Below are positions 4,301-21,142 of a DNA stretch of 64,000 nucleotides, piece after piece (position 1 is the stretch's first letter; each line of letters starts with the position of its first letter). The position numbers and the translations under genes were made by a program. The notes beneath the pieces are model-generated. The model worked only from the letters and a program-made list of their open reading frames with translations. It ran no database searches and was not told the DNA's origin. This DNA comes from Hyalangium minutum (GTDB lineage: Bacteria > Myxococcota > Myxococcia > Myxococcales > Myxococcaceae). The DNA lies in NCBI RefSeq assembly GCF_000737315.1, contig NZ_JMCB01000009.1, positions 186,001 to 250,000 of the forward strand, written 5' to 3'.

Positions 4301-4354
4301 CTCCTCTCCATCGAGGACATAACAAACAAACAACAATTCGATAAAAACAGGTAA
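1322..4354 (+). CDS. CheB methylesterase / CheR methyltransferase / coiled-coil / PAS fusion
   Basis: CheB motifs GASAGG, VQHL, LSGTGTDG. CheR motifs VTAFFRDP, WVPGCSTGEE, ISCRNVLIY. NEELQSTNEEL coiled coil and two PAS-like domains. Exact start uncertain. Confidence 0.9.
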   Translation: MMGASQRQEGRRVKKRSAPRPSAASAQRSRTEAMLYPERFPLVGIGASAGGLPAFLSLLKHLPTQTGMAFVIVQHLAPARESILAGLLAKATAMPVLEATDGLDLEPNHVYVSPPGVGITFAQGALRLKARRAPGQRRHLIDNFLTSLAQASPGRAIGVILSGTGTDGTQGLQAIHAAGGTTLVQEPASADFDGMPWSAIAAGCVDHVLPPEGIAEVLAQLANVTAPSPGSSASATASPLLMPQEELGQIFQLLRSTARVDFTHYKPTTIHRRLERRMSLCRVGQLGDYVRYLREHPEELELLHQDLLIHVTAFFRDPATFEVLQQKIFPQLFENRPQELPFRIWVPGCSTGEEAYSLVISLLEFLGPAAAPPPVQVFATDLSEAAIEQARTAIYPASIASSVSPERLHRFFVQTDGGYRITKAVRSLCIFAQQNLVSDPPFSQVDLISCRNVLIYLGPVLQKKVMPILHYALRPGGFLVLGSSETVGSSADLFSLVDKRCKIYRKKNVSPRPGVLFSYRDAHAEKPIPSRRKHEPTTMTEELQREANRLVLARYGPPGVIVNGELEILHFRGHTGPYLELIPGAASLNLLKLVREGLALDLRSALHEAKKSARRVRKEGLVLPAEGTLRKVNLEVHPLSSVTAGREPYFLVLFEEVQEVASTQPQEDRASARRGRSSAAQSELERLREELLTTQEHLKTVLAQQEATHEELRTATEETQSSNEELQSTNEELETAKEELQSTNEELTTVNEELENSNLELSQLNSDLNNLIGSTHIATVMVDNERRIRRFTPMAAAVLRLSATDIGRPIRDVQGSLSLPDLEAALTEVIERLTLVEQEVCDRDGHWYSLRLRPYKTLDNRIDGAVVTLLDIDRLKRSLDDVRKTREYAKAIVETMREPFLVLDAALHVLNANPAFYSTFHIKQEQTLGRPLYALGNGQWNIPRLRQLLEEILPLNTHLQDFVMEHEFYTIGKRRMLLNARRISSDELGSPYILLSIEDITNKQQFDKNR

Positions 4355-4418
4355 ATCAGACTAGCCTGGAGAAGGGGCGCGTGACTAAGCTCCCCTCTCT
4401 GTGTGTGTGGGGGGGGTA

Positions 4419-6125
4419 ATGGGTAACCAGCGGAGCATGTCGCGCGCGGAAGTGGAGCAGGCTGTGCACTCGCTCGAGTGCAATCCCACCGCGCCGGATG
4501 AGCTGAAGCACCTGCTGCGGGAGCTGCAGCGCCACCAGCTGGAACTCGAACTGCAGAACCGCGAACTCCAGGAGGCGCACCAAGCGCTGGAGGAGTCGCG
4601 CAACCGCTACATGGAGCTCTACGACTTCGCGCCCATGGCCTGCGTGAGCCTGAATGAGCGCGCGTGCATCCAGGATCTCAACCTGACGGGCGCGGCCCTG
4701 CTGCGCCAGGATCGCACCTTTCTCCAAGGCCTGCCCTTCACCCCTTTCGTGGATCCCCAGGACGTGAGCCGCTTCCTGCTGCACGTGCGCCAGTGCATCG
4801 CGGGCGAGACGTTGAGCACGGAGCTGCGGCTGCGCGTCGCCAGGAGCCAGTTCGAGGTCCGGCTCTACAGCGCCCCGCTCCAGGACGGGAGGCCGCACGA
4901 GCGCATGTGCCGCACGGCCATCATCGACATCACCGAGCTGCGGCAGGTGCAGCTGCGCCTGAGCCTCGCCGAGCGCCTGGCCACAGTGGGCACGATCGCG
5001 GCGGGCATTGCCCACGAGATCAACAACCCCCTGGCCTTCCTCATGGGGAACCTCACGCTCGCCACGCTCACGTTGCAGTCCCAGGCCCCCGAGGCTGAGG
5101 TGTCACGGCCGCCAGGCGCCCTGGAGGGACGTCCCCCCGCGGAGCGGGCCCTCAAGGCGTTGGCTGAGGCCCAGACGGGCGCCGAGCGCATCCGGGACAT
5201 CGTGAAGGATCTGGGCGCCTTCGCCCGCCCCACCGCCTCGAGGAAGGGGCGCGTTGACGTTCAGCAGGTGCTGGAGCTGTCGGTGAAGATGGCCATGGCC
5301 GAGATCCGCCACCGCGCCACGCTCGTGCGGGACTACGCCAAGGCTCCGGAGATCACCGCCGATTCCGCCCAGCTGGGGCAGGTCTTCCTCAACCTGTTGG
5401 TGAACGCGGCGCAAGCCATCCCGGAAGGCGCGGCTTCCCTTCACGAGATCCGCCTGCGCGTGCGCACCGAGGAGGACACGGTCCTTGTGCAGGTCGAGGA
5501 CACGGGCGAAGGCATCTCCGCCCAAATCCTCGATCGCGTCTTCGACACCTTCTTCACCACCAAGGCGCCGAGCCATAGCATGGGGCTCGGGCTCGCCATC
5601 AGCCACAGCCTGGTGTCGCAGATGGGAGGGACCCTCACTGTGGAGAGCAAGCTGGGCCGGGGAAGCACCTTCTCCGTCCGGTTCCCCGCTGCGGCGCCCC
5701 CACCGGCGCTCACGAGAGAACGAGCTTCTCACCCGGCGCCCCCATCCGCTCTCCAGGGGGGGCGGATCCTCATCGTGGATGACGAGCCGAAGTTCGGCGA
5801 GACCTTGCAAATGCTCCTGAGCCTCTCTCACGAGGCCGTCTACACCTCCAGTGCACGCGAGGCCTTGCTCTGGATCCAGGAGGGCCACCACTACGACGCC
5901 ATCCTCTGCGATCTCATGATGGCGGAGGTGACCGGCCGGCAGTTCTATGAAGAGCTCTGCCAGCTTGCGCCGGAGATGGCCCGCCGCGTCATCTTCATGA
6001 CGGGTGGAGCCTATACCCCCGCCTCCCAGGAATTCGTCTCCGGGATGACACGCCCTTTGCTCATCAAGCCGTTCAAGGCCGATGCGCTCGATCAGGCGCT
6101 GCGGCCCCTCCTGCCGTCGGTTTAG
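4419..6125 (+). CDS. PAS hybrid histidine kinase with C-terminal receiver
   Basis: H-box GIAHEINNPL, N-box QVFLNLLVNA, G1/F/G2 boxes DTGEG, FFTTK, GLGL; receiver RILIVDDE...KPF. ATG at 4419 preferred over GTG at 4401. Confidence 0.9.
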   Translation: MGNQRSMSRAEVEQAVHSLECNPTAPDELKHLLRELQRHQLELELQNRELQEAHQALEESRNRYMELYDFAPMACVSLNERACIQDLNLTGAALLRQDRTFLQGLPFTPFVDPQDVSRFLLHVRQCIAGETLSTELRLRVARSQFEVRLYSAPLQDGRPHERMCRTAIIDITELRQVQLRLSLAERLATVGTIAAGIAHEINNPLAFLMGNLTLATLTLQSQAPEAEVSRPPGALEGRPPAERALKALAEAQTGAERIRDIVKDLGAFARPTASRKGRVDVQQVLELSVKMAMAEIRHRATLVRDYAKAPEITADSAQLGQVFLNLLVNAAQAIPEGAASLHEIRLRVRTEEDTVLVQVEDTGEGISAQILDRVFDTFFTTKAPSHSMGLGLAISHSLVSQMGGTLTVESKLGRGSTFSVRFPAAAPPPALTRERASHPAPPSALQGGRILIVDDEPKFGETLQMLLSLSHEAVYTSSAREALLWIQEGHHYDAILCDLMMAEVTGRQFYEELCQLAPEMARRVIFMTGGAYTPASQEFVSGMTRPLLIKPFKADALDQALRPLLPSV

Positions 6126-6202
6126 TTGAAGGGAGGCCGTAACTCGTCAATCCTCCGTTGCGCAGGCCCGCCTCACTCCCCCTCGACCTCTGGAGGTCGC
6201 TC

Positions 6203-7450
6203 ATGGCCAAGCGCATCCTTGGAATGATCCTGGCCGGTGGCCAGGGAACCCGGCTCGCCCCCTTGACGTCGCGGCGCTCCAAGCCCGCGGTGCCGTTCGG
6301 CTCGAAGTTCCGCATCATCGACTTCGCGCTGAACAACTTCATCAACTCGGGCATCTATTCGATCTACGTGCTGACGCAGTTCAAGGCGCAGTCGCTCACC
6401 GAGCACATCCAGCGAGGCTGGCGCTTCGGCACGTTCCTGTCGGACTACTTCATCACGCTGGTACCGGCGCAGATGTACCGCTTCGAGGAGCTGGGGCCCG
6501 TCTGGTACCGCGGCACGGCGGACGCCATCTACCAGAACCTGCACCTGGTGGAGAACCACGGGGCGGACCACGTGGCCATCTTCTCCGGCGACCACATCTA
6601 CAAGATGAACGTGGCGCACATGCAGGAGGCGCACGAGTCCCAGCGCGCGGACATCACCATCGCCGCCTACCCGGTACCGGTGGCCGAGGCGAGCCGCTTC
6701 GGCATCATGCAGGTGGACGAGCGCGGCCGCGTCACGGACTTCCAGGAGAAGCCCAAGGAGGGCGCGAAGACGATCCCGGGCCGGCCGGACATGGTGCTGG
6801 CCAGCATGGGCAACTACATCTTCCGGCGGCAGGTGCTGCAGGACCTGCTCGAGCTGGATGCGCGCGAGGAGGGCTCGCAGCACGACTTCGGCAAGAACAT
6901 CCTCCCGCGGGCGCTGAAGGACGGGTACCACATCCAGACGTATGACTTCACGCGCAACCCCATCCCGGGGCGGGATGCGCCGAACACGTACTGGCGCGAC
7001 GTGGGGACGCTGCAGGCGTACCACGAGGCCTCGATGGACCTGGTCTCGGTGAACCCGGAGTTCGACCTGTACAACCCGCACTGGCCGCTGCGCACGGCGA
7101 ACGAGTACAGCCCGCCAGCGAAGTTCGTCCACGAGGCCGGGGATCGGGTGGGCCGGGCGCTCAACTCGCTGATTGCCGGCGGCTGCATCATCTCCGGCGG
7201 CGTGGTGCGCGAGAGCATCCTCTTCCGGTGGGTGCGCGTGAACTCGTACTCGGAAGTGTACCGCTCGGTGATCTTCGACGAGGTGGACATCGGCCGCCAC
7301 GCCCAGATCAAGAACGCCATCATCGACAAGGGTGTGCGCGTGCCGCCGAACACGAAGATCGGCCATGACCTGGAGCAGGACAAGGCGCGCGGCTTCACGG
7401 TGACGGACAACGGCATCGTCGTGGTGCCCAAGGGCTACAAGTTCGGCTGA
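6203..7450 (+). CDS. glgC: Glucose-1-phosphate adenylyltransferase
   Basis: [50 protein letters not shown]; GGAGG RBS before ATG 6203. Confidence 0.95.
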
Positions 7451-7463
7451 AGGTTGGCACTGC

Positions 7464-8618
7464 ATGCGGCGCAAGCTCCGAGCGGCGCTCCTGGGAGTTC
7501 TGGCCGCAGTGCTCGGGGCGAGCCTGCTGGTCGGGCCGCGGTACCTGCGAGGGCTCTCGCTGGTGGTCCGGGCCTCGGGGATGCAGGAGGAGTGGGCCAC
7601 GTCGCTGGCCCGATGGCAGACGGGGCCGTTCGAGGTGTCCGATCTCCAGGTCCCCTCGCGCCATGGGCCGCTCAGGGCCCGGCTCTACCGTCCTCGGGAA
7701 GCACGGGGACACCCGATCGTGCTCACATCGGGAGTCCACGCGGACGGTATTGATGAGCCACGGCTGGTGAAGCTGGCGAAGGACCTCGCCACGGGTGGCC
7801 AGGTGGTCCTCACGCCCGAGCCCACGGATCTCCTCCGCTACGAGATCACCCCTCGGCTCCCGGACATGATCGAGGACGCGGCAGCGTGGCTCTCCACACA
7901 GAAAGAACTCGCTCCCGACGGAAGGGTCAGCCTGTTTGGCATCAGCTTTTCCGGGGGGCTCTCGATCGTCGCGGCGGGGCGTTCTGAGTTGAAGGACAAG
8001 GTGGCCGCCGTGCTCTCGCTGGGCGGGCATGGCGATCTGTCGCGTGTGCTCTCTTTTCTGTGCACGGGGGTGTTGCCGGATGGCCGTCCGCTGAAGCCCC
8101 ACGATTACGGGGTGGTGGTCATTCTCATGAACGTCGCCGACCGGCTGGTGCCCCCGGAGCAGGTAGAGCCACTGCGCACGGGCATCCGAACGTTCCTGCG
8201 AGCCTCGCACCTCACGCTTCATGACGCGAAGCGGGCGGAGGAGACGTTCGAGGAGGCGCGTAGGATGCAGGGCCAGTTGCCCGAGCCCGCCTCTCGCCTG
8301 ATGGGGTACGTCAACACGCGGGATGTGGCGTCCCTGGGACCGTTGTTGCTGCCGCTGGTCCAGGACTTTGCCGCAGACCCCTCTGTGTCGCCGGAGCGCT
8401 CCCCTCCTCCGTCAGCCCCTGTGTATCTGCTGCACGGCGCGGACGACACGGTGATCCCCGCCGTGGAGGCCTCACTGCTGGCCCAGGCGCTGCGGCCTCA
8501 TACGAAGGTCCACCTGCTGGCGACTCCGCTGATCACCCACGCCGAGGTTGACCGGAGTGCGCAGTGGGGCGACGTCTGGGAGCTCGTGTCCTTCTGGACG
8601 CACCTGCTCGAAGAATAG
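7464..8618 (+). CDS. Alpha/beta-hydrolase fold protein, N-terminal signal/TM
   Basis: Nucleophile elbow GISFSGG, LLHGADD and C-terminal ITHAE; hydrophobic N-terminus. Confidence 0.75.
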   Translation: MRRKLRAALLGVLAAVLGASLLVGPRYLRGLSLVVRASGMQEEWATSLARWQTGPFEVSDLQVPSRHGPLRARLYRPREARGHPIVLTSGVHADGIDEPRLVKLAKDLATGGQVVLTPEPTDLLRYEITPRLPDMIEDAAAWLSTQKELAPDGRVSLFGISFSGGLSIVAAGRSELKDKVAAVLSLGGHGDLSRVLSFLCTGVLPDGRPLKPHDYGVVVILMNVADRLVPPEQVEPLRTGIRTFLRASHLTLHDAKRAEETFEEARRMQGQLPEPASRLMGYVNTRDVASLGPLLLPLVQDFAADPSVSPERSPPPSAPVYLLHGADDTVIPAVEASLLAQALRPHTKVHLLATPLITHAEVDRSAQWGDVWELVSFWTHLLEE

Positions 8619-10683: not shown

Positions 10684-12486
10684 TCAGACGATGCGGAACA
10701 CCCGCCCTGTGGGCACGAAGGGCAGGTGCCGCCCCTGCGGCAGCAGGAAGGCGTGCTCGCGCCGGAGCTGAAGCCGGTCGCACTCTCCATCCGTGATGAT
10801 GAGGATGGGCCCCTGTTTCGGGAAGTCCTCGGCTCGCTCCAAGAGATCGATCCCTGGCTGGAGGACCGTGCCACCTCGGCCGCGCACCCGCACCCGCTCG
10901 GCGATGGCCTCGGGTGCGACATAGCCTTCGTCGTACGCCACTGCGTCACAGAAGACGAGCCGCACCCGGGACACGTCCCGCGCCAAGCTGTAGCTCGCGA
11001 TGGCCCCGAGCGCCTTGGCCAGCAGCTTGCGGTCCATGGAGCCTGACGTGTCCAGCACCACCCCGAAGGTTCTCCCCTCCTGGGATTCCTCCCGAGGCAC
11101 CCACAGCGGCCGAGGAATGTCAGGGGTGGCCGACTGGCGCCGGCTGAGCCGTGTGTACGTCCGCCGCTTCTCCAGCGGGGAGAAGTGCGCGTCGAACCAC
11201 TGCGCCAACTCCACGTCCCATGGAATGGGCGGCTGATCCAGTGCGCGGATCTCCTCCACCAGGCCCGCAGGCAGGAAGCCCCGGCCCTCGGACTGGTGGT
11301 ACGCGAGTCCCTGCGACAAGCAGCGCCGGTAGAAGGCATCGAGCGTCATGCCATCGCCGTGCAGCCACCACTCGGGAGTGGTCCCGTCCAGCATGTCCCC
11401 GAGCCCGTAGCCGCGCAGCGTGGCCAGCTTCCGGTAGCGGCGCACGTCCGTGACAATCCGATCGTAGATGGCCTCCGCAGACAGCCCCTTGAGCTCGGGA
11501 TCGTAGAGGACGCCGAAGCTCGGCAGCTCGCCGACGCCCATCTCCACCAGCCAGCCGTTCACCACGTAGTCGCAGGCGACGTTCCACAGATAGGGATCCC
11601 GCCCCTGGCGGCGTGACTGGTGACGCAGGCCCACGTGAAGCAGTTCGTGCGCGATGACGAAGCGAGCGCTGCCCTCGTACAGCCCGGCCGAGGGGTTCAC
11701 GTAGATCTCCCGCGCCTCCTCGTCCACCGCCGCCACGGTGATCTGCATCCGCTGACAGACCAGCGGATCCTCCACCAGAGTGAAGTGCGCCGCGAGCGAG
11801 CCGAGCAGGGGGAACCGGGAGATGAACCACGAGCGCGCCCGCGAGGCCTCCGTGTGCACGCGCTCGCGCGGACTCATGGACTGCCGCAGCCCCGCAGCCA
11901 GCTCCACCGCCGAGTCCACCGCCTGCACGAGCCCCTGGGCCAGCAGCTTCTCCCAGTCCTGCTCCTGGCGGGTACTGGCCATTCCCACATCGACCATGTC
12001 GTAAGAGTTCGGGCCCGCCGCCCCGCAGCCCGCCAGCTTGGGAGGAATGCCGTCGCGAACGAAGCTCTCGTACAACCGCTCCTCGCTCTTGGAGCCGAAG
12101 TCCAGCTCCACCAGCATGTCCTCCGGCGGACGTCCAAACTTCAGATCCTTCAGGAAGCGCGCCACGAAGCAGTCGCACGCCGTCTGCCAAGCCACGGGCT
12201 CGGGGACGAGCTTGAAGTGGCCCAGTCCCAGGTGCAGCAGGCAGTGGGCGATGACGTAGGCCCACTCCTCCACCGAGCCGCGCCGCTTGGGATGCGCGTA
12301 GAGGACTCCGCCCGGGCCCACCACCATCCACCCGTTGGGCGGATACGGCGTGCTCTCGCGCCGGTACACAGCCGCACGCCACATCAGCGGGCCGAAGATG
12401 GGGTGGGCGCGCACCGTGCCGACGGCCTGCTCGAAGGCCTCAGTGGCGGGATCTCCTCCGCGCTTCTTGTCCTCCTTACGCGCCAT
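10684..12486 (-). CDS. DUF2201-type metallopeptidase + vWA protein with duplicated peptidase module
   Basis: AHCLLH and AHELLH motifs, each followed by an ACD motif; MIDAS VLDTSGSM, GGT and ITDG; overlaps the upstream ATPase by 11 bp. Confidence 0.85.
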   Translation of the reverse strand: MARKEDKKRGGDPATEAFEQAVGTVRAHPIFGPLMWRAAVYRRESTPYPPNGWMVVGPGGVLYAHPKRRGSVEEWAYVIAHCLLHLGLGHFKLVPEPVAWQTACDCFVARFLKDLKFGRPPEDMLVELDFGSKSEERLYESFVRDGIPPKLAGCGAAGPNSYDMVDVGMASTRQEQDWEKLLAQGLVQAVDSAVELAAGLRQSMSPRERVHTEASRARSWFISRFPLLGSLAAHFTLVEDPLVCQRMQITVAAVDEEAREIYVNPSAGLYEGSARFVIAHELLHVGLRHQSRRQGRDPYLWNVACDYVVNGWLVEMGVGELPSFGVLYDPELKGLSAEAIYDRIVTDVRRYRKLATLRGYGLGDMLDGTTPEWWLHGDGMTLDAFYRRCLSQGLAYHQSEGRGFLPAGLVEEIRALDQPPIPWDVELAQWFDAHFSPLEKRRTYTRLSRRQSATPDIPRPLWVPREESQEGRTFGVVLDTSGSMDRKLLAKALGAIASYSLARDVSRVRLVFCDAVAYDEGYVAPEAIAERVRVRGRGGTVLQPGIDLLERAEDFPKQGPILIITDGECDRLQLRREHAFLLPQGRHLPFVPTGRVFRIV

Positions 12487-13537
12487 CCTTGCGCTCCACC
12501 AGCCGAGGCAGATCGCGCACGATCTCCAGCAGCAGCCAATCCGGCAGCCCCTCGCCGTCCTGCCGTGCCACCACCATCTGCGCCATCTCGAAGCTGATGG
12601 CCGCCAGGTTCTTGATCAGCGCCTTGGCCCGGTGCGCCAGCTCGCGGTGGTGCTCAGCGAGCGCCTCGCGCGTACGCGGCAGCTCCTTGATGAGCTGGGC
12701 CCGCAGCGACTGCGAGAGGAAGTAGAGGACATCCCGATCCTCGGGCGCGTGGGGCCAGCCCATCTCGCCCCGGAGGATGGCGTTGAGCCGATACTTGCTG
12801 CGCGCCTGCTTCACGAACGCCTTGAACTGCCCCGCGTGCACGGGCGAGAGGCACCCGTAAGCCAGCACCTCCAGCGTGGCGTCCGGCACGTCCCCGCCAT
12901 ACTCCTTGAGGGCGTCGCTGAGCATGTGCCACGAGCGCGGCGTGGAGAACGGCTCCTCGTGCTTGGGAGGATTGCTCCAGAGGTGGTCTGGCCGCAGGCG
13001 GATGTAGTCGAGCACCATCGGGTGGAGTTCGGCCTGATGCGCCCACTCCAGCCAGTCTTGGTGCGAGGCCTGGAGCTGCACGTGGATCATCCGGTTGATG
13101 AGCGCCGAGGACATGGGCTTGACGATCGCGCTGTCCTGCGCCCGGTTGCCCGCGCCGATGACGATGGAGCCCGGGGGCAGCTCGTACTCGCCGATGCGCC
13201 GCTCGTGGATGAGGCTGTAGAAGGCCTTCTGCACCTCGTGCGAGCAGGCGTTCAGCTCGTCCAGGAAGAGGCAGTAGGGCTCACTGCGGGCAATCATCGT
13301 GGGCGGGCAGAAGCGGCTCTTGCCGTCGACGATCTGCGGCACACCGATGAGGTCCTCGGGCGCGAGCTGGCTGCCCAGCAACGACACGCACGGCAGCCCC
13401 ACCTGCTTGGCGAACTGCTGGACGATGGAGGACTTGCCGATGCCCGGTGGCCCCCAGATGAACACCGGCCGGATGACTGCGACGTGGAGGAGATACTCGG
13501 CCAGCGACTTCTGGGTCAGCGTCTGGACAGCGTTCAC
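12476..13537 (-). CDS. MoxR/dynein-related AAA+ ATPase
   Basis: Walker A GPPGIGKS, Walker B LFLDE, AGNRAQD, SALINR; GTG start with AGGAG RBS. Confidence 0.9.
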   Translation of the reverse strand: MNAVQTLTQKSLAEYLLHVAVIRPVFIWGPPGIGKSSIVQQFAKQVGLPCVSLLGSQLAPEDLIGVPQIVDGKSRFCPPTMIARSEPYCLFLDELNACSHEVQKAFYSLIHERRIGEYELPPGSIVIGAGNRAQDSAIVKPMSSALINRMIHVQLQASHQDWLEWAHQAELHPMVLDYIRLRPDHLWSNPPKHEEPFSTPRSWHMLSDALKEYGGDVPDATLEVLAYGCLSPVHAGQFKAFVKQARSKYRLNAILRGEMGWPHAPEDRDVLYFLSQSLRAQLIKELPRTREALAEHHRELAHRAKALIKNLAAISFEMAQMVVARQDGEGLPDWLLLEIVRDLPRLVERKDGA

Positions 13538-13711: not shown

Positions 13712-15123
13712 TCGCCCAGCAGCTCCTTCACCTCGCGCTGCCAGCGCTCGCCCAGCTCCGGGTGCACCATCTTCACGTACGCTGCGTAGCCTCGCAGCCA
13801 GCCCGAGAAGTCCTTGCGGCCCCGCGACTGGGACTCCACGCCGTGCTTGCGGCAGTTGTTCAGGATCGCCTTGAACCGGCGGCGCTCCTCGCGAGGAATG
13901 GACACCTGCTCGTTCACCGTCAGGCCCGTCACCCTCTGGCGCGAGTTCTTGCGCATCACCCGCCGCTTCGGCGCGTTCTCCAGGAAGCCCTCCTGCTGGA
14001 GGATGGCGTTCACCCACCACAGGAAGCGCCCCAGCTTCTCGGGCGGCTTCTCGAAGGAGAAGGACAGGTCATCCGCGTAGCGCGTGTAAGTGGCACCCGC
14101 CTTCTTCGCCAACGCCGTGAGCCGAGCGTCCATGCGCCGGCACACCAGGTTTGCGATCGCCGGAGACGTGGGCGCTCCCTGCGGCAGTGCTCCCGGCCAC
14201 ACCACTGTCCCATCCGGCAGCTTCGGCCGGTGCGTGGAGAGCCCCGCCAGCGTGCGGGCCACCTCGTCACCGTAGCCGTGCGCCTGGAACAGACCCTTCA
14301 CGCGCCGGTAGTGCACCGTGGGGAAGAAGTCCTCCAGATCCACGCGCACCACCACCGTGGCGCCCGTGTGCGGCTCGGCGTTGCTCACCGTGGAGCGCCC
14401 CTTCACGAAGCCGTGCGCGGCGTCGTGCGTGGGCATCTGCTCCAGGATCTTCTCGAGGATGGCGCGCTGCACCTCCTTGAGCTTCGCCCGAGGCGCCGAG
14501 ATGCGGCGCACCCCGCCCGAGCGCTTGGGCACCTCGAACTCCACGTACCCCGAGCCCGCCTCCGTGCCCGGCCGCATCAGCGCGGCGAGCTCCTCCTCTT
14601 GCACGCCCACCAGCTCCGCCACATCCTTCCGGGTGGACAGCTTGGGCAGCTTGCCCTTCAAGGGAGGCTGCTTCTTGGGGCGCCCTCCCCAGCGCATGGG
14701 GAGACCGAAGTTCCAGCCCGTGGGGTTCCAGCCGCCGCGGGACTGGGGCGTCGGGTGGCGCGGCGGCTTGAAGCGACGGTCCGGCGGCGCCACATCCGCC
14801 AGCCCCAGCTTGTGCACCGCGGCCCGCGCCGCTCCCGCCACCTGCTTGTCAGGGTCCTTCACCAACCGGCGCAGCTGCGCCGAGGCCGTTGCCCGCGCGA
14901 AGAGCAGCGGGATCTGCTGCGTGCCCTGGTGCCGCTCGCGCGGGTCCACGCTGCGCAGCATGCGCCCCACCGGCGCCAGCCACTGGCGGCTCACGTAGAA
15001 GCGCGCCACCTCGTACTCGGCCAGATTCTGGTGCTGCTCCAGCAGCGCGGTGATGCGCTTGAAGTTCGCTTCAGGGTCCGCCATCAGGGGCTTCAGCTCG
15101 AGGAGGAGGCCCACCAGGTCCAT
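13708..15123 (-). CDS. Retron-type reverse transcriptase with N-terminal HEAT-like helical extension
   Basis: Region X NAEPH, DLEDFFP, LPQGAPTSP, YADD, region Y VTG (RVTGLTV). Start placed at ATG 15123 (alternative 15129) downstream of GGAG. The longer ORF from 15504 runs through the ncRNA. Confidence 0.92.
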   Translation of the reverse strand: MDLVGLLLELKPLMADPEANFKRITALLEQHQNLAEYEVARFYVSRQWLAPVGRMLRSVDPRERHQGTQQIPLLFARATASAQLRRLVKDPDKQVAGAARAAVHKLGLADVAPPDRRFKPPRHPTPQSRGGWNPTGWNFGLPMRWGGRPKKQPPLKGKLPKLSTRKDVAELVGVQEEELAALMRPGTEAGSGYVEFEVPKRSGGVRRISAPRAKLKEVQRAILEKILEQMPTHDAAHGFVKGRSTVSNAEPHTGATVVVRVDLEDFFPTVHYRRVKGLFQAHGYGDEVARTLAGLSTHRPKLPDGTVVWPGALPQGAPTSPAIANLVCRRMDARLTALAKKAGATYTRYADDLSFSFEKPPEKLGRFLWWVNAILQQEGFLENAPKRRVMRKNSRQRVTGLTVNEQVSIPREERRRFKAILNNCRKHGVESQSRGRKDFSGWLRGYAAYVKMVHPELGERWQREVKELLGE

Positions 15124-15167
15124 TCCCATGCTCTCCCGGGGCTGCGGCCCCGCGCGTCGAAACCACT

Positions 15168-15326
15168 GCGCTCCTGGGGCCGCCGCCACCTGCACGGCAG
15201 ATGCACGAGTGGTCAGGGAAGCCCGCAAGGCGGACCACGCGCTGCGTCGTTCTTCAATGGGTATCGCTGGCAGCCGCGACGTGACATCGCGGACGGAAGG
15301 CTGGCTGCACGCGACCCCAGGAGCAC
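15168..15326 (-). ncRNA. Retron msr-msd non-coding RNA
   Basis: Transcript 5' arm GUGCUCCUGGGGUCGC (15326-15311) pairs with 3' arm GCGGCCCCAGGAGCGC (15183-15168): 16 bp including 2 G-U pairs. First unpaired base is G15310. Internal hairpins CCGCGAUG-UCA-CGUCGCGG, GUGGUC...GACCAC and CAUCUGC-CGU-GCAGGUG. Lies 45 nt upstream of the RT start. Confidence 0.8.
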
Positions 15327-15364
15327 TGTTGACTCCAGCACATTCGATTCCCAGAGGGAAGCAT

Positions 15365-18241
15365 TCACCGGGTCGGGGGAGGCTCGCCCTCCTCATCGAG
15401 GAGTGCCAGGAAGGTGTCTCGCGTCCCCCCGGGTGCCTGGCGGATGAGGGCGTTGAACTGCTGGGCCCGCGCGCGGACCCGCGCTCCGTGGGCCTGCATG
15501 GCACCGAGAGCCTCGGGGACCATGGTGGGCCGGGCGAGCACCTCCAGGTTCTGCGCCAGCTCGCGGTGGCTGCGGGGTGCGGAGAGGCAGGCGCTCACGC
15601 CGGGCTGCGAGAGGCTGTAGCGGTAGCAGTCCACCGCCGTGGGGAGCACGGCGTCCGCGGGCACCCCGGGCGCGGGCTGGAGCAACCGGCCATAGCAGGT
15701 GGCCGTGAAGGTGAGGACTCCAGTTCCCCGCGCGAGCGCCTCGGGGAAGAAGGAGGACTCCGCGCCTCGGTATGCGGCGCTGTGGCGCGTCATCACCACG
15801 GGCCAGGGGCGGCTCCGGATCGCTTCCGTGGCCACGTCTCGCAGGTGGGTGGAGAAGCCGAAGGCGCGGAGCTTGCCCTCGGCGCGGAGCTTCTCCAGGG
15901 CCTCGAAGTCCTCGTCATTGAGGCGCTCAGGCGAGCGCACCCAGAAGAGGAGAAAGACGTCCAGCCAGCTCGTGCGCAGCTGGCGCAGCGCGGACTCCAC
16001 GTCCCGGCGGAGCGCCGCAGGGCCCGAGTGGTACGAGCCCGCGACCAGCACGAGTCCCTCCCGCTGGCTCCGGAGAGAGCGCAGGAAACGGGTGAGCTGG
16101 AGGTACTCTGTCTCCCAGAAGAAGGTGTTCACACCGGCCTCATGGGCCTCGGCCAGCGAGGCGGCGGACAGGCCGTTGGCGCCCGAGAGCACCAGCGGGG
16201 AGACGCGCAGCCCCGTGTTCCCGAGGAGGCGCAAGGAGGGCCGAGAGGGGCTCTCGGGAGGCGTGCGCTTCGTGGGGGTCTTGTCCCGGCGAGGCCGTGT
16301 GGGCCGGCGCTGCTCCAGGTCAGGGGCTGAGGAGAAGACCTCGTCCGGGAAGATGAGGGTCATCGCCTCGAGGTGGGCGACCACCCGCTGTGGCTCCGAG
16401 GTGTCTCGTAGCGCGGCGGCCAGGTGCTGGAAGGCGGTGGAGTCCGCACGGCGCAACAGCCAAGTGTAGGCGGAGGCGCGAAGATCGGGCTCCCGCGTAC
16501 GCATGGGGCCTCGCAGCAGGCCGGCCAAGAGCGCGTCGAGTGTCTCGCACGCCTCGAGCACGGCTGCGGCAGCGGCTCGAACCATCGGAGAGGAATCGAG
16601 CGACAGGCGAAGGAGCGCCTCCAGTTCTTCCCGTGCGCCCTCTGCGTGAAGCAACTCTGCGCCACGGGCGCGCATCCACGGATCGGGGGAGCGCGCGCTG
16701 GCAAGGCCCACGCTGCGCAGTTCATTCGGTGAGAGGCTCACGCGGTGGGAGGCCAGGAGCGCGAGTGCCGATCGCCGTACCGAGAGGTCCGGATCGGACT
16801 CACATGCCTCTCGCGCCGAGGTCACGTCCAGCACAGCCGTGCGGATCCAGGGGTCCTCGTGCGAGAGGGCGTCGCGGCGTTCCTCCTCCGTGAGGGTTCC
16901 CTGCTCCGAACGCTCCCCGAGGGCCACTGCACGAACCGACACATCGGCATCGGTCGAGAGGCGCGCGAGCAAGGCCTCGTCGCCGACGCACCCGGCGGCC
17001 CCCGCAACGGCGCGGCGCTCGTGCGGAGTACAGGCCTGGGGAGCGAAGGCCACGAGGGCCCGCGCGAAGGCCAGAATGGCCGAGGGCGCAGGAGGCCGCT
17101 GCTCCCAGGCAGCGATGACCTCGTCACGCACGGACGCGTCCGGGTCACTGAGCGCAGCGAGCACCACTTCGCGGCTTGCGGGATCGTGTACGAGACCGGA
17201 GAGAGCTGCGCGCCGGACGGCGGGCTCCGCATGCCGGGCCAGGGCTTGGACCTGCTGGATGAGCTCGGGGTGATCCCTGCGCACCGCGATGCGGGCGGCC
17301 CAAGCGACCGCGCCCGGCCTTGGAGGTTCACCGAGGATACGCGAGGCCAGGGCGAGTTCATCCAGGTCGATCCGCTGAAGCAGAGAGCGAACCTCATCGG
17401 CGGAGTGAGGAACGCGCGGCTCATCCAGCCAGCGCATCACGAGCCTGACAGCCTCGGGATCCCGGAGTTCGATCAGACGCCGCCGCGCGAGGGAACGGAG
17501 CGGCTCGTGCGGATCTCCCAACCACTCCACCAGCTTGATGAGCGGCACCTCTGAGGCAGAGAGCCGCTCAAGCCGGGCTGTGACCACGGCGGGATCCTGG
17601 TCGTCCAGTCCCGCCTCGGCAGGTACCGGGAGAGGCCCCGCGAAGCTGCCCTCCTGAGGTGACGGAGCGGAAGAAGTCCAAGCGCCTTCGAGATACGCGG
17701 CGGCCGCCCGGACTGAACCGGGCCCTGCTGCATCACCTACGGCGCGCACACGTTGGCGGACCTCCGCGTGGGTCTCTCCCAGCCAGAGCAGCGCCTGCAC
17801 GGCCGCGCTTCGCACCCGCCAGAAGGGATCCTCTAAAGTTTGGATGAGCAATTCGAGCGCGCCGGTGCCTGCGACGGAGGCAGCAGCTCTGACGGCGGCC
17901 CGCCGCACCCACCAGACCGGCTCCTCACGGACGGCCTGTTCCGCCTGAGGAAGCAGTTCCCGCGTCCCCATTCGGGCCAGGGCGCGCCACACGCGATCGC
18001 GAACCATGGGAAGAGGGTCGCGCAGCGCCTCAATGAGCGCGCGGGCAAAGAGGCGATCCCGCGCCTCGCCGAGCCGCCGTGCGGCGGAGGCCCGGACCTC
18101 GGCGTCCTCATCCCCCAACAGGGCCTGCCTGAGCGCGTAGCGGCCCGTGAGCGTCGTGGCATCCACGGCGTCCACAGCCTCGCGGCGCACCTCAGCGGAC
18201 TCATCGAACAGCCGCACTGCGGCCGGGTTCAAAGGCGTCAT
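15365..18241 (-). CDS. HEAT/ARM-repeat protein fused to a C-terminal aldo-keto reductase-like domain
   Basis: Many L.DP...VR..AA.AL repeats over the first ~660 aa; AKR-like N-terminal motif LGNTGLRVSPLVL at ~16.24 kb, plus SALRQLRTSWLDVF and KLRAFGFSTH. Confidence 0.85.
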   Translation of the reverse strand: MTPLNPAAVRLFDESAEVRREAVDAVDATTLTGRYALRQALLGDEDAEVRASAARRLGEARDRLFARALIEALRDPLPMVRDRVWRALARMGTRELLPQAEQAVREEPVWWVRRAAVRAAASVAGTGALELLIQTLEDPFWRVRSAAVQALLWLGETHAEVRQRVRAVGDAAGPGSVRAAAAYLEGAWTSSAPSPQEGSFAGPLPVPAEAGLDDQDPAVVTARLERLSASEVPLIKLVEWLGDPHEPLRSLARRRLIELRDPEAVRLVMRWLDEPRVPHSADEVRSLLQRIDLDELALASRILGEPPRPGAVAWAARIAVRRDHPELIQQVQALARHAEPAVRRAALSGLVHDPASREVVLAALSDPDASVRDEVIAAWEQRPPAPSAILAFARALVAFAPQACTPHERRAVAGAAGCVGDEALLARLSTDADVSVRAVALGERSEQGTLTEEERRDALSHEDPWIRTAVLDVTSAREACESDPDLSVRRSALALLASHRVSLSPNELRSVGLASARSPDPWMRARGAELLHAEGAREELEALLRLSLDSSPMVRAAAAAVLEACETLDALLAGLLRGPMRTREPDLRASAYTWLLRRADSTAFQHLAAALRDTSEPQRVVAHLEAMTLIFPDEVFSSAPDLEQRRPTRPRRDKTPTKRTPPESPSRPSLRLLGNTGLRVSPLVLSGANGLSAASLAEAHEAGVNTFFWETEYLQLTRFLRSLRSQREGLVLVAGSYHSGPAALRRDVESALRQLRTSWLDVFLLFWVRSPERLNDEDFEALEKLRAEGKLRAFGFSTHLRDVATEAIRSRPWPVVMTRHSAAYRGAESSFFPEALARGTGVLTFTATCYGRLLQPAPGVPADAVLPTAVDCYRYSLSQPGVSACLSAPRSHRELAQNLEVLARPTMVPEALGAMQAHGARVRARAQQFNALIRQAPGGTRDTFLALLDEEGEPPPTR

Positions 18242-18260: not shown

Positions 18261-18292
18261 CCTTGGTAGAATCGCGCCCATGCCTGACATGC
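18261..18292 (+). repeat. Direct repeat copy 1 (extended -10 TGgTAGAAT + ATGCCTGACATGC)
   Basis: CCTTGGTAGAATCGCGCCCATGCCTGACATGC; 31/32 identical to 20470-20501. Confidence 0.9.
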
Positions 18293-19641
18293 GGGCGTTG
18301 CAGGGGAAGATGCGCTGGGTGCTCTCGCACCGGTTGGGGCCTCTGGCGCTGGCCCTGCTGGTGGGATGCAGCAGTTCCACGCGGATCCTGCGCCTGGAGG
18401 CGGAGCAGCCCGAGCCCATCGTCCACATTGCTCCCGGAGACCGAGCGCCCGTGCGAGTGGACAGCGCGGCCTTCCTGGAAGCCTTCTCCACGCATGCCTT
18501 GCAGGTGCAGCCTGCCCCACAACCGCTCCAGCAAGCGCAGCGCTTGTGGCTGCTCCCCTCTCGAAGCGCTCCCTACGCCACTGCGCGCAGCCGCCTGGGC
18601 CTCGTCTCCGTGAATACTCAAGAGGACATGCCTCGGGGTCACCTGCTTCCAGAGACCTCTGCAGCGGAGGGCTCCATTTCGCGTGATTATGGCCTGTGGT
18701 GCGAGAGCCGCTCCCTGCCTCTGGACTGCCTTCAGCTACTGGACGGGGGAGCACTGCTGAGCCATGACGGCAAACGCGCCCTGGCCCTGCACTTCGCCCT
18801 GACCTCCCTCTGGCTGGAGACGAAAGACGCGCTGGAGCAGATGGTGGACCCGTTGGCGATTCAGACCACCCTCGTCTCCGCCATGACGATGTACCTCATG
18901 CTCTGGGTTCTTCCCGAGCCTCTCTCCAAGGGCATCGCTGCGGCCATGACCGTGGCCCTTATTGGCTACCTGGGCTTCGACACTGTCTGGAGCCTGTTCC
19001 AAGGGTGGGCCCTGCTGGTCGAGGACGTGGACAAGGCCACCTCCTTCGACCAGGTACGGGATGCCGGACGCCGGTTCAGCAGAGTGCTGGGGCCCAACGC
19101 CGCCCGTGTCTTCGCCATGCTCTTCACTGTCGCCGCAGGCAACACGGCGGCCGGCTTTGCCTCCAAGCTGCCCTCCCTACCCGGCGCGCCTCAGGCAACC
19201 CTGGCAGTTGCAATCCCTGGAGGTACCCCTCTCTCCCTCGCGGCCGCGGTGGACTCCGTCACCGTCTCCGCCTCAGGCGCCACCCTCGTCCTGGCACCTG
19301 GCGCCGTGGCCATGGCCAGCTCGGGCGACACGACCGTCTACATCTCGAGAAACGGAGGACAACTCCAATACGTAGGCATCACGAACGACCTTGCACGGCG
19401 CGCAGCGGAGCAACTCCGCGAGAAGGGAATCCACATTGAAGACCTGATGAATAATCTCTCAAGAGAGGATGCTCGTGCCGTCGAACAAGTCCTCATCGAG
19501 ATCCATGGTCTTCAGAAGAATGGCGGTACTCTTCTGAACCGCATCAACAGCATTGCTCGCTCAAACCCCAAGTACGCCCGCGCGCTGCGTCGAGGCAAAG
19601 AACTCCTCAAGACCCTCAAGAATGGGGACCAATTGGAATGA
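18280..19641 (+). CDS. SitA5-like polymorphic toxin lipoprotein with GIY-YIG/URI-type nuclease tip
   Basis: Lipobox LLVGC; conserved myxobacterial body (YGLWCE, DCLQLL, PEPLSKG, GFDTVW, APGAVAM); AT-richer tip VYIS...YVGITNDLARR...EQVLI. True start may be ATG 18310. Confidence 0.75.
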   Translation: MPDMRALQGKMRWVLSHRLGPLALALLVGCSSSTRILRLEAEQPEPIVHIAPGDRAPVRVDSAAFLEAFSTHALQVQPAPQPLQQAQRLWLLPSRSAPYATARSRLGLVSVNTQEDMPRGHLLPETSAAEGSISRDYGLWCESRSLPLDCLQLLDGGALLSHDGKRALALHFALTSLWLETKDALEQMVDPLAIQTTLVSAMTMYLMLWVLPEPLSKGIAAAMTVALIGYLGFDTVWSLFQGWALLVEDVDKATSFDQVRDAGRRFSRVLGPNAARVFAMLFTVAAGNTAAGFASKLPSLPGAPQATLAVAIPGGTPLSLAAAVDSVTVSASGATLVLAPGAVAMASSGDTTVYISRNGGQLQYVGITNDLARRAAEQLREKGIHIEDLMNNLSREDARAVEQVLIEIHGLQKNGGTLLNRINSIARSNPKYARALRRGKELLKTLKNGDQLE

Positions 19642-20456
19642 CCGGCTCGCGCAAAAAAGCGAAGTTCGGAGACATCGCCGAAGTTCGCACGCCTCGAGGG
19701 CTCGCCTATGTGCAGTACACCTCCAAGCATCCGAGATACAGCGATACCATCCGTGTGCTTCCTGGGCTTTTCAAGATACGCCCTTCTAACGACGAACTCG
19801 CTGCGCTCGCAACCCAAGAAGGGTACTTCGTCTTCTATCTTGTGAGCCTCGCCGTCAAACATGGGCTTGTGGAGATCATCGGTCATTACCCGATCCCCGT
19901 AGGGCTCGATGCTCCAGCCAAGCTGCTGAGAGTCGGCTTCATCGCGCCCGGGGGAAAAGTCATGACCTGGGTTCTTCTCGAAGGCGCTAAGGAGACTCTC
20001 ATCAAGAGAGAGCTCTCTCCCGAGGAGAAACGCCTCTCTCGCGCTTCTATGTGGAACCACGAGTATCTGGTGCAGCGCCTGGCAGAGCAGTGGCGGCCTG
20101 AACATGAGCATGAGCCACGCCCGCCCGCTCCCGTGACCAGCACGCCGCCGGAACCTTCGGGACAAGCGGAAGCGCCCCCCACCGCGTCCTCCGCCACCAC
20201 TCCGCTGCGCATGAGCCACTACCTCTACTTCCCTCTCACCAAGGACGGTAAAGCCGTCGCTGCAGAACTGCGTCGCCGTGGCTTCGAAATCGAGAGCCGC
20301 AAAGGCGCCGATGGTGTGAACTGGCTCGTCCTCGTCCACCACACCCTCTCCTCCTCCGAGGATGAGGCCGCGCTCACCGTCCGCGACGAACTGGAGCGCC
20401 TCGCCCAGCAACACTCCGGCGAGTATGACGGCTCGGAGACCGCGCTCCCGGAGTGA
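19638..20456 (+). CDS. Cognate immunity protein (Imm26-like N-terminus + RraB-like C-terminal domain)
   Basis: ATGA overlap with the toxin stop; N-terminal GDIAEV...YVQY pattern; Pro-rich linker; C-terminal HYLYFP...GEYDGSET. Confidence 0.6.
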   Translation: MTGSRKKAKFGDIAEVRTPRGLAYVQYTSKHPRYSDTIRVLPGLFKIRPSNDELAALATQEGYFVFYLVSLAVKHGLVEIIGHYPIPVGLDAPAKLLRVGFIAPGGKVMTWVLLEGAKETLIKRELSPEEKRLSRASMWNHEYLVQRLAEQWRPEHEHEPRPPAPVTSTPPEPSGQAEAPPTASSATTPLRMSHYLYFPLTKDGKAVAAELRRRGFEIESRKGADGVNWLVLVHHTLSSSEDEAALTVRDELERLAQQHSGEYDGSETALPE

Positions 20457-20469
20457 ATGTGGCAGCGCC

Positions 20470-20501
20470 CCTTGGTAGAATCCCGCCCATGCCTGACATG
20501 C
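20470..20501 (+). repeat. Direct repeat copy 2
   Basis: CCTTGGTAGAATCCCGCCCATGCCTGACATGC; one mismatch versus 18261-18292. Confidence 0.9.
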
Positions 20502-21142
20502 TGGCCATCATCAGCAAGGCGGTCTTCGAGAAGGAGGCTGCCGGCCTCAAGCCTGGGGACGTCCTTCCCCTCGACCGGTACCGCAGCGCGAGCCGCCACC
20601 TCGATCCCTTGAAGTCCGGCGGCCGCCTCTTCCTCGTCACCGTGCGCCCTCCGAAGGAGGCGCTCTGGTGGGTGGCCGTCCTCGAAGGCCTCAAGTTCCA
20701 GGACGAAGAGTGGCGCGCTACGCCCAACCGCATCCCCATCACCGACATCACCCGCCTCATCCCAAAGCTCCGCTTCGAGTCCGGCAAAGGCATCACCGCC
20801 GCCAAGGGCGCCCTGGGCATGTCTCTCCAGACGCCCCGCGTCCTCGCCGCTGAGGACCTCGCGCTGCTCCTGCCCTCCGGCAACAACGGCCCCGCCGAGG
20901 CCCCCGCCCCCGCAGGCCCCATCAACCTCACCGCCCACGAGCCGGACTCGCCCCTGCCTTGCCTGTGCAAGCGCTGCCTGCCCAAGGCCCCCGAGCGGGC
21001 CCAAGCCAAGGGTATGGCGTTCACCCGCGCCCACGTCGAAGCCGCGGACCGCGTCCTCCACTACTGGCTCCCCGATGAGCTGCTGCACGACGCCGCCCGC
21101 GTCTCCCAATCCGTGCTCGGAGCCCTGCACGCCCGGCTCTAA
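20489..21142 (+). CDS. Hypothetical protein with C-terminal CxCxxC motif
   Basis: Strong GC3 bias; starts MPDMLAIISK inside repeat copy 2; PCLCKRC motif. Confidence 0.7.
   Translation: MPDMLAIISKAVFEKEAAGLKPGDVLPLDRYRSASRHLDPLKSGGRLFLVTVRPPKEALWWVAVLEGLKFQDEEWRATPNRIPITDITRLIPKLRFESGKGITAAKGALGMSLQTPRVLAAEDLALLLPSGNNGPAEAPAPAGPINLTAHEPDSPLPCLCKRCLPKAPERAQAKGMAFTRAHVEAADRVLHYWLPDELLHDAARVSQSVLGALHARL

Follow-up and report, generated by a model that had tools for sequence, protein, structure and literature searches.

Does the inverted repeat directly upstream of a reverse transcriptase (RT) gene in Hyalangium minutum delimit the RNA gene of a retron and, if so, which of its guanosines primes the synthesis of multicopy single-stranded DNA (msDNA)? 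The DNA analysed, hereafter referred to as the window, is a GC-rich (70% GC) stretch of 64,000 nucleotides (nt) from contig NZ_JMCB01000009.1, and positions given without a locus name are those of the window. The element (15168-15326) is read on the minus strand, occupies the gap between two minus-strand genes and is very probably, judging from comparison with its homologues, the msr-msd non-coding RNA (ncRNA) gene of a retron. The start codon of the RT gene, set by homologue alignment, lies at 15123 on the same strand, 45 nt downstream of the end of the 3' arm (15168). An earlier interpretation based on the letters of the window (hereafter referred to as the sequence-only reading) had already proposed a retron msr-msd at this site, and the minus-strand location directly upstream of a retron RT gene, the a1/a2 stem, the msr hairpin and the msd stem-loop all agree with that proposal. 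The locus thus offers a compact RNA of about 155 nt, with a comparative model, built from 44 copies, that names the bases to mutate.

The two arms of the closing stem, a2 (GUGCUCCUGGGGUCGC) and a1 (GCGGCCCCAGGAGCGC), form 16 consecutive pairs, two of which are G-U, and enclose 127 nt, as the sequence-only reading had it. This stem was the best hit of the region in an inverted-repeat search (arms of 19 nt, 15165-15183 and 15311-15329, 84% Watson-Crick), the pairing being weakly extendable to 15165-15329. Its score of 32 was reached by none of 500 shuffled sequences (mean 9.9, maximum 23). The folding energy of the whole sequence, on the other hand, was not exceptional relative to shuffles (z of -0.76 for the minus strand and -0.48 for the plus strand); in DNA with 70% GC, thermodynamics alone is therefore uninformative, and the comparison of homologues was used instead. 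These unremarkable z-scores, together with the many short inverted repeats nearby, are what would be expected of a chance repeat or a dispersed intergenic palindrome of a GC-rich genome. Such an origin is nevertheless extremely improbable, given the shuffle test, the presence of a single copy in 64 kb, the retention of the element between the same two genes across families of Myxococcota and the strong covariation described below.

The set of 44 distinct copies was assembled from the regions upstream of related RT genes, a metagenome pattern scan, nhmmer searches and a covariance model. A first genome scan with a generic YTRYADDL pattern gave about 10 close loci among the matches listed, and the metagenome pattern scan yielded mostly chance coding matches, from which about 20 genuine loci were kept after filtering. 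Covariance modelling, suggested as a check in the earlier interpretation, identified a single copy in the window (model R1; 15170-15324, minus strand, 160 bits, E 7e-42) whose pairs covary across the homologues; the nhmmer match of the element had an E value of 9e-37. The homologous RNAs lie upstream of genes for RTs that are 50-90% identical, in Myxococcota. All 44 copies have the closing stem, with a length of 11-25 bp and 39 distinct arm sequences, and when each stem was compared with dinucleotide shuffles, only 0-3 of 500 equalled it.

Pairing was assessed on two alignments. In a plain MAFFT alignment of 24 sequences with a hand-drawn core structure (A3), 87.8% of cells were paired, versus 28-43% when the partners were slid, with P2, the inner helix of the closing stem, paired in 100% of cells and P3, the msr hairpin, in 99.6%. 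In a model-fitted alignment of 47 rows (A4), 93.2% of cells were paired, versus 72% when shuffled and 34-49% when slid, and double changes were found in 34 of the 46 pairs, including 14 of 14 in the outer a1/a2 helix, although these counts are biased towards structure by the fitting itself. P2 remained 98% paired on A4. Exchanges of C-G for U-A were observed in both P2 and P3: the third pair of P2 (C15303-G15187) is C-G in 12 copies, U-A in 18, U-G in 10, A-U in one and mismatched in three, and the exchange in P3 runs 17:7 on A3 and 30:13 on A4. The msd stem (P4) showed double changes at every pair on both alignments and is the most variable part of the RNA; the three tandem copies of one related locus (L097) have wholly different stems with the same apical CCGCUCUUGCGG.

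The closing stem is composite, with the variable outer helix (a2/a1) separated by an internal loop from a conserved inner helix of 4 bp (GCCA/UGGC). The pairs of this inner helix are C15185-G15305, G15186-C15304, G15187-C15303 and U15188-A15302, followed by a bulged G15301 and then by G15189-C15300. Three hairpins, P3, the P4 stem-loop and a triloop, lie inside the stem, in agreement with the earlier count of at least three. P3 is likely to be the recognition hairpin of the RT, and the conserved linker GAAGAACG, at the msr/msd junction, is likely to be the region in which complementary DNA (cDNA) synthesis terminates and the 3' ends of RNA and DNA overlap. In the comparative model, the a1/a2 arms and the msd stem are free to vary, whereas the inner helix and the motif AGYNAGC are fixed. 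An msr-msd is expected to have just such an anatomy, its closing repeat and template stem-loop being free to vary and its recognition hairpin fixed, which argues for a genuine retron ncRNA gene; the element also has an RT gene as a neighbour on the same strand, a2/a1 inverted repeats, a guanosine in an AGC context and msr hairpin(s) followed by an msd stem-loop. A conserved and highly structured RNA in the 5' region of an RT gene, for which msDNA is predicted only, might alternatively be a leader or regulatory RNA of that gene (an attenuator, a riboswitch-like or a stability element) that is never reverse transcribed. We regard this explanation as very unlikely, because the architecture is exactly that of an msr-msd, from the variable closing repeat and the invariant AGC at its inner end to the short msr hairpin and the long variable stem-loop, and because the partner gene encodes a retron RT with retron-specific motifs. 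Moreover, the two to four tandem copies with different stem-loops found in relatives fit templates better than leaders, and no terminator-like site was found in our scan. The coordinates of the features of the locus are listed in Table 1.

Table 1. Features of the retron locus in the window and of tandem arrays in related loci.
Feature	Position	Strand	Evidence
Putative retron ncRNA gene (msr-msd), 5' arm a2 to 3' arm a1	15168-15326	-	Covariance model, nhmmer
a2, 5' arm of closing stem (variable outer helix)	15311-15326	-	Folding, inverted repeat, covariation
a1, 3' arm of closing stem	15168-15183	-	Folding, inverted repeat, covariation, shuffle test
Direct repeat CGUGCAG, 5' copy, immediately 5' of inner helix	15305-15311	-	Covaries with 3' copy
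Internal loop, 5' side, GUGCA, between outer and inner helices; includes G15310	15306-15310	-	Variable spacer
Motif AGCCAGC (consensus AGYNAGC), candidate priming guanosines G15301 (preferred) and G15305	15300-15306	-	Invariance
msr hairpin P3, 8 bp, loop UCA	15274-15292	-	99.6% paired, covariation
Linker motif GAAGAACG, msr/msd junction	15248-15255	-	Conserved across homologous copies
msd stem-loop P4, conserved apical mini-hairpin CCGC-CUU-GCGG at 15233-15223	15200-15248	-	Double changes
Triloop hairpin UGCCGNGCA, 3 bp (15199-15191), invariant; holds 3' direct-repeat copy CGUGCAG (15196-15190)	15190-15199	-	A3, A4
Inner helix P2, 3' strand (GGUGGC region)	15185-15189	-	Paired in A3, A4
Predicted msDNA, ~59-66 nt; cDNA is the plus-strand sequence starting CTGCACGGCAG	15190-15255	+	Ec86-like geometry, family anatomy
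Possible RNA promoter (weak), CTTCCC-N13-TGTGCT	15337-15360	-	Aligned flanks
Retron RT, 471 amino acids (aa), N-terminal extension of ~155 aa	13708-15123	-	Pfam RVT_1; PADLOC RT_XIII, E 9.7e-119
HEAT-repeat/aldo-keto-reductase-like fusion, 958 aa, candidate accessory component	15365-18241	-	Pfam HEAT_2, HEAT, Aldo_ket_red
217-aa protein, candidate further component	20489-21142	+	Co-occurrence, domain fusions
Natural arrays in relatives	L097 295-855; L159 312-847; L149 536-2114; also L004, L010, L133, L138, L143, L162, L170, L183, L186		

The RT encoded next to the element gave its best PADLOC match with RT_XIII (395 bits, versus 333 for the next model), and all the other top matches were also retron RT models. 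Its motifs NAEPH (NAxxH, at residue 248), YADD (349) and VTG (398) are invariant in the family alignment, and its N-terminal extension is labelled HEAT-like in some relatives. The highest identities (85-87%) are to RTs from Hyalangium, and the family reaches Archangium, Vitiosangium, Pyxidicoccus, Myxococcus, Corallococcus, Polyangium and uncultured Myxococcota. Among solved structures, those of the retron Ec67 and Ec86 RTs are the nearest, and none of a type XIII RT was found in the Protein Data Bank. We assign the RT to the type XIII clade (clade 10) by profile match rather than by tree. Retron-Mxa1/Mx162, Sau1/Sa163, Mxa2/Mx65 and Nex2/Ne144 make up type XIII, which has been described as vertically inherited in myxobacteria and as associated with a protein (cluster 114) bearing a DEDE motif, a winged helix and a C-terminal SWIM zinc finger (PMC7736814). 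On the combined evidence of gene context, RT and RNA, it is highly likely that the element is the msr-msd ncRNA gene of a retron, with an RT from the type XIII clade that also contains Mx162, Mx65, Sa163 and Ne144.

A second, canonical type XIII lineage was observed in Hyalangium and Archangium (L051 563-7170; also L055, L061, L073 and L040). The L051 locus encodes a 1031-aa WGR-HEAT protein, a 554-aa SWIM protein, an ncRNA with a1/a2 arms of about 32 nt and a 533-aa RT. This second RT lineage is not that of Mx162 or Sa163.

In validated retrons, the priming G stands in a T/C/G-AGC context at or just after the inner end of the 5' arm, and by the textbook rule it follows the a2 arm (PMC6868368). 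Applied to the visible 16-bp arm, this rule designates G15310, which the sequence-only reading took for the branch guanosine, and the cDNA would then start next to a1, at 15184. G15310 is indeed the first base left unpaired after the 5' arm, also in the single-sequence fold, and the spacer GUGC in which it lies is constant in the window's own subgroup. Across the 44 copies, however, 0-7 nt of variable sequence separate the arm from the first conserved base, this spacer being absent in four copies, and the first base after the arm is C in 15 copies, A in 13, G in 12 and T in four, so G15310 was judged not to be conserved. It lies, moreover, outside any AGC context, and the covarying helix P2 would fall downstream of a branch at this position and would have to be melted to serve as template. 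A branch at G15310 is thus very improbable, and G15312, which had also been named for mutation, sits in the variable part of the arm. Taking the first G after the visible stem for the branch is a natural mistake, which the comparison corrects.

Conservation points to the motif AGYNAGC (AGCCAGC in the window, A15306-C15300), the A, G, A, G and C of which do not vary in alignment A2 or A3. As the closing stem is composite, the priming position would be expected at the end of the inner helix, which is G15301. In every copy, this base comes directly after the A-U pair that ends the inner helix, and its context is CAGC, TAGC, AAGC or GAGC. The second invariant guanosine, G15305, stands in CAGC in the window and in GAGC in many relatives, which match the contexts reported for Mx162/Sa163 and for Mx65. 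The same two candidates are found in the canonical type XIII loci of the L051 type, where a2 is followed by AG(U), ACCUU, a bulged G and a C paired with G-AAGGU, the same layout as in the window. In Ec86 (Retron-Eco1), an A-U pair is followed by the unpaired G of AGC and by a C-G pair, one base beyond which the template begins, and the window resembles it in each of these respects. We therefore favour G15301, with little more than even confidence, and retain G15305 as a possible but less likely branch site.

A direct repeat of 6-7 nt flanks this region, with one copy before the inner helix and the other before the 3' strand of that helix. The sequences of the two copies covary between lineages (CGUGCAG, CGAGCAG, CCGAGC, CGGAGC, CAGAGC, GAGAGC, GCGAGC and CCACGCA), and their identity over four positions was 3.1, versus 2.2 +/- 0.14 for permuted pairs, a value reached by none of 10,000 permutations in a test in which kinship was uncontrolled. 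An analogous repeat, GCAGUAC, is present in loci of the L051 type. Identical RNA segments cannot pair with each other, but the 5' copy can pair with cDNA templated by the 3' copy, and the msDNA would, on the simplest reading, fold back with its 5' end onto the msr beside the branch, with a loop of 3-5 nt if G15301 is the branch. In the window's subgroup, the repeat ends at the predicted first template base, and reading the repeat as a fold-back would place the start of the template at about 15190; the first templated base is predicted to be G15190 if the geometry of Ec86 holds. In most copies, 64-69 nt separate the predicted template start from the GAAGAACG motif; in one class, which has longer stems, the distance is about 83 nt. 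The small msDNA anticipated by the earlier interpretation is thus plausible, the predicted product being contained within 15184-15310. As DNA, its sequence forms a stem-loop at -13.2 kcal/mol, no better than shuffles.

The following mechanism would be compatible with these observations. The minus strand would be transcribed from near 15330, possibly on through the RT gene, and the RNA would be closed by the variable a2/a1 arms and by the conserved 4-bp inner helix. The RT would bind the msr hairpin (15292-15274) and prime from a conserved guanosine, through its 2'-OH, where the inner helix ends; the bulged G15301 would be the most likely such base, and G15305 a less likely one. The cDNA would begin at about G15190 and copy the msd stem-loop up to the GAAGAACG junction, yielding a branched, RNA-linked single-stranded DNA of about 59-66 nt, from which the template would be removed by a host RNase H. 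Since the template begins with a second copy of the 7 nt that directly precede the inner helix, the 5' end of the msDNA could then fold back onto the msr, beside the branch. By analogy with other retrons, the complex of RT and msDNA, acting with the HEAT/aldo-keto-reductase fusion and perhaps with the 217-aa protein, would probably serve in phage-sensing defence; no type XIII effector mechanism was identified in the literature searched.

The predicted size of the msDNA raised the possibility that the element is an orthologue of retron Mx65, and hence already characterised. Mx65 consists of a 65-nt msDNA on a 49-nt RNA branched at G4, and its RT is reported to have a substitution of the Asn of NAxxH (PMC6868368). 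The 65 nt of Mx65 are close to the 59-66 nt predicted here, the first AGC stands in a GAGC context in many of the relatives, as reported for Mx65, and both retrons are myxobacterial and of type XIII. The Asn of NAxxH (N250) is, however, invariant in 19 of 19 aligned members of the window family, including those from Myxococcus species, which renders identity with Mx65 unlikely. In addition, no M. xanthus protein was present among the best 120 RT matches (at least 55% identity). RT-Mx65 is 427 aa long, whereas the RT of the window has 471 aa. Orthology with Mx65 is accordingly improbable, and we retain the interpretation of the element as an msr-msd distinct from it.

Several observations weigh against the interpretation of the element as a retron ncRNA gene of this clade, or limit its precision. 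The lineage is known here from its sequence alone, transcription and msDNA being predicted. To the unexceptional folding energy and the fitting bias of A4 must be added the imperfect correlation between the direct repeats, about one quarter of the copies being mismatched and the test lacking phylogenetic control. Comparison alone does not separate the two invariant guanosines. The canonical type XIII SWIM protein is absent: tblastn with the SWIM protein of L051 against the 64-kb window gave no match at E 1e-3. No Rfam match was obtained at the gathering threshold for the whole window, and none but chance matches at E values up to 10 for 15000-15500; this result counts for little, because Rfam has no model for this lineage and its retron family was built from other lineages. 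The earlier remark that the sequence was not a recognised one was thus fair, with regard both to Rfam and to the one checkable trait by which the RT family differs from RT-Mx65. Finally, neither a consensus promoter (sigma-70 scan) nor a terminator was found around the element.

In close relatives, the sequence directly upstream of a2 contains CTTCCC-N13-TGTGNT. In relatives with several RNA units, a TAyyrT-like hexamer lies about 8 nt before the a2 arm of each unit. These flanking motifs suggest that there may be one promoter per RNA unit.

The gene on the other side of the element encodes a protein with HEAT repeats (HEAT_2, E 1e-30) and a C-terminal aldo-keto-reductase-like domain; it lacks a WGR domain and matched the PADLOC model HEAT-ARM_XIII weakly (E 2.7e-9), but provides the HEAT/ARM neighbour characteristic of type XIII. 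The order of HEAT/aldo-keto-reductase gene, RNA and RT gene is kept down to RTs that are about 50% identical. A gene for a SWIM protein is not adjacent to the RT gene in syntenic relatives, and no WGR-HEAT homologue was found within the 64-kb window. The 217-aa protein has the same taxonomic distribution as the RT family, and is encoded on the same contigs. In distant relatives, the gene that immediately follows the RT gene encodes an LRR protein beginning with the N-terminal domain of the 217-aa protein, and the C-terminal domain is found, as a fusion, at the N-terminus of the HEAT protein; these fusions with RT neighbours argue for a functional link. It belongs to no family in Pfam, NCBIfam or PADLOC and has the invariant motifs GxLGMSLQTPR and PCLCxxC. 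A search with its AlphaFold model, which is a confident one (AF2, pLDDT 87.5), gave weak matches to YTH-like folds (E 0.04-0.2), none of them at E 0.001 or better.

The window contains a single RNA unit, but arrays of two to four complete msr-msd units were found in relatives, between the HEAT/aldo-keto-reductase gene and a single RT gene. The RTs of these relatives are 50-57% identical to that of the window (69% in L004), and the units of an array differ in their msd stems and, in some loci, also in their a1/a2 arms. In nature, to judge from these loci, one retron RT may have several templates. Our literature search yielded no description of natural retron ncRNA arrays, the tandem msr-msd layout having so far been presented as an engineering design ('multitrons', PMC10370050). 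The arrays resemble multitrons in having two to four tandem units on one RT, and differ from them in being natural. Two of the array-bearing loci are interrupted: the RT gene of L010 is split by an insertion of about 3.9 kb (3327-8605), and about 3.4 kb separate the two RNA units of L004 from the RT gene (2542-6001). Both interruptions are likely to be insertions of mobile elements.

Type XIII, with Mx162, is the founding group of retrons, and the element of the window shares with it the best RT model, an extended N-terminus of the RT, a myxobacterial host, a distribution that looks vertical, an adjoining HEAT-repeat gene and an ncRNA upstream of the RT gene with an a1/a2 stem and an AGC motif. 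It differs in the lack of the SWIM/winged-helix gene of cluster 114 and of a WGR-HEAT gene, both of which are present at L051, in the fusion of its HEAT protein to an aldo-keto-reductase-like domain, in the co-occurring 217-aa protein, and in the short predicted msd (about 59-66 nt, versus 162, 163 and 144 nt). With Ec86 it has in common an msr hairpin followed by an msd stem-loop, and an RT with NAxxH, YADD and VTG for which the Ec86 RT is among the nearest solved structures; it is unlike Ec86 in its composite closing stem with an internal loop of 2-8 nt, in the covarying direct repeat that flanks the branch and the template start, in its different effectors and in the absence of sequence similarity. 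At the sequence level, the window thus displays every feature of an msr-msd and of a retron RT, without the SWIM protein of type XIII.

These differences raise the possibility, which we put forward as a tentative one and consider rather doubtful, of a distinct retron subtype. It would be defined by a composite stem with a bulged priming G and a covarying repeat with its fold-back, by natural arrays of two to four units, and by a set of HEAT/aldo-keto-reductase and YTH/PUA-like 217-aa proteins replacing the SWIM and WGR-HEAT proteins. If this were so, three features that we did not find described for retrons would be added, and one RT would make several different msDNAs. The related loci also suggest that neither the current classification nor the PADLOC models cover the full variety of accessory modules in this clade.

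Two further groups of genes lie near the retron. Directly downstream of the RT gene, an AAA_5 (MoxR-like) ATPase and a DUF2201 metallopeptidase/VWA-like protein are encoded at 10684-13537 on the minus strand. They were rejected as core parts of the system because they are missing in L001, the RT of which is 83% identical, though present in L168; they are probably an unrelated pair. On the plus strand, at 18280-20456, two overlapping genes, for proteins of 453 aa (no family) and 272 aa (RraB-like domain), are inserted between the HEAT gene and the gene for the 217-aa protein, which are directly adjacent to each other in L003 and L119. The GC content of the pair is 0.60-0.64, versus about 0.70, and it may be an insertion of the toxin/immunity type.

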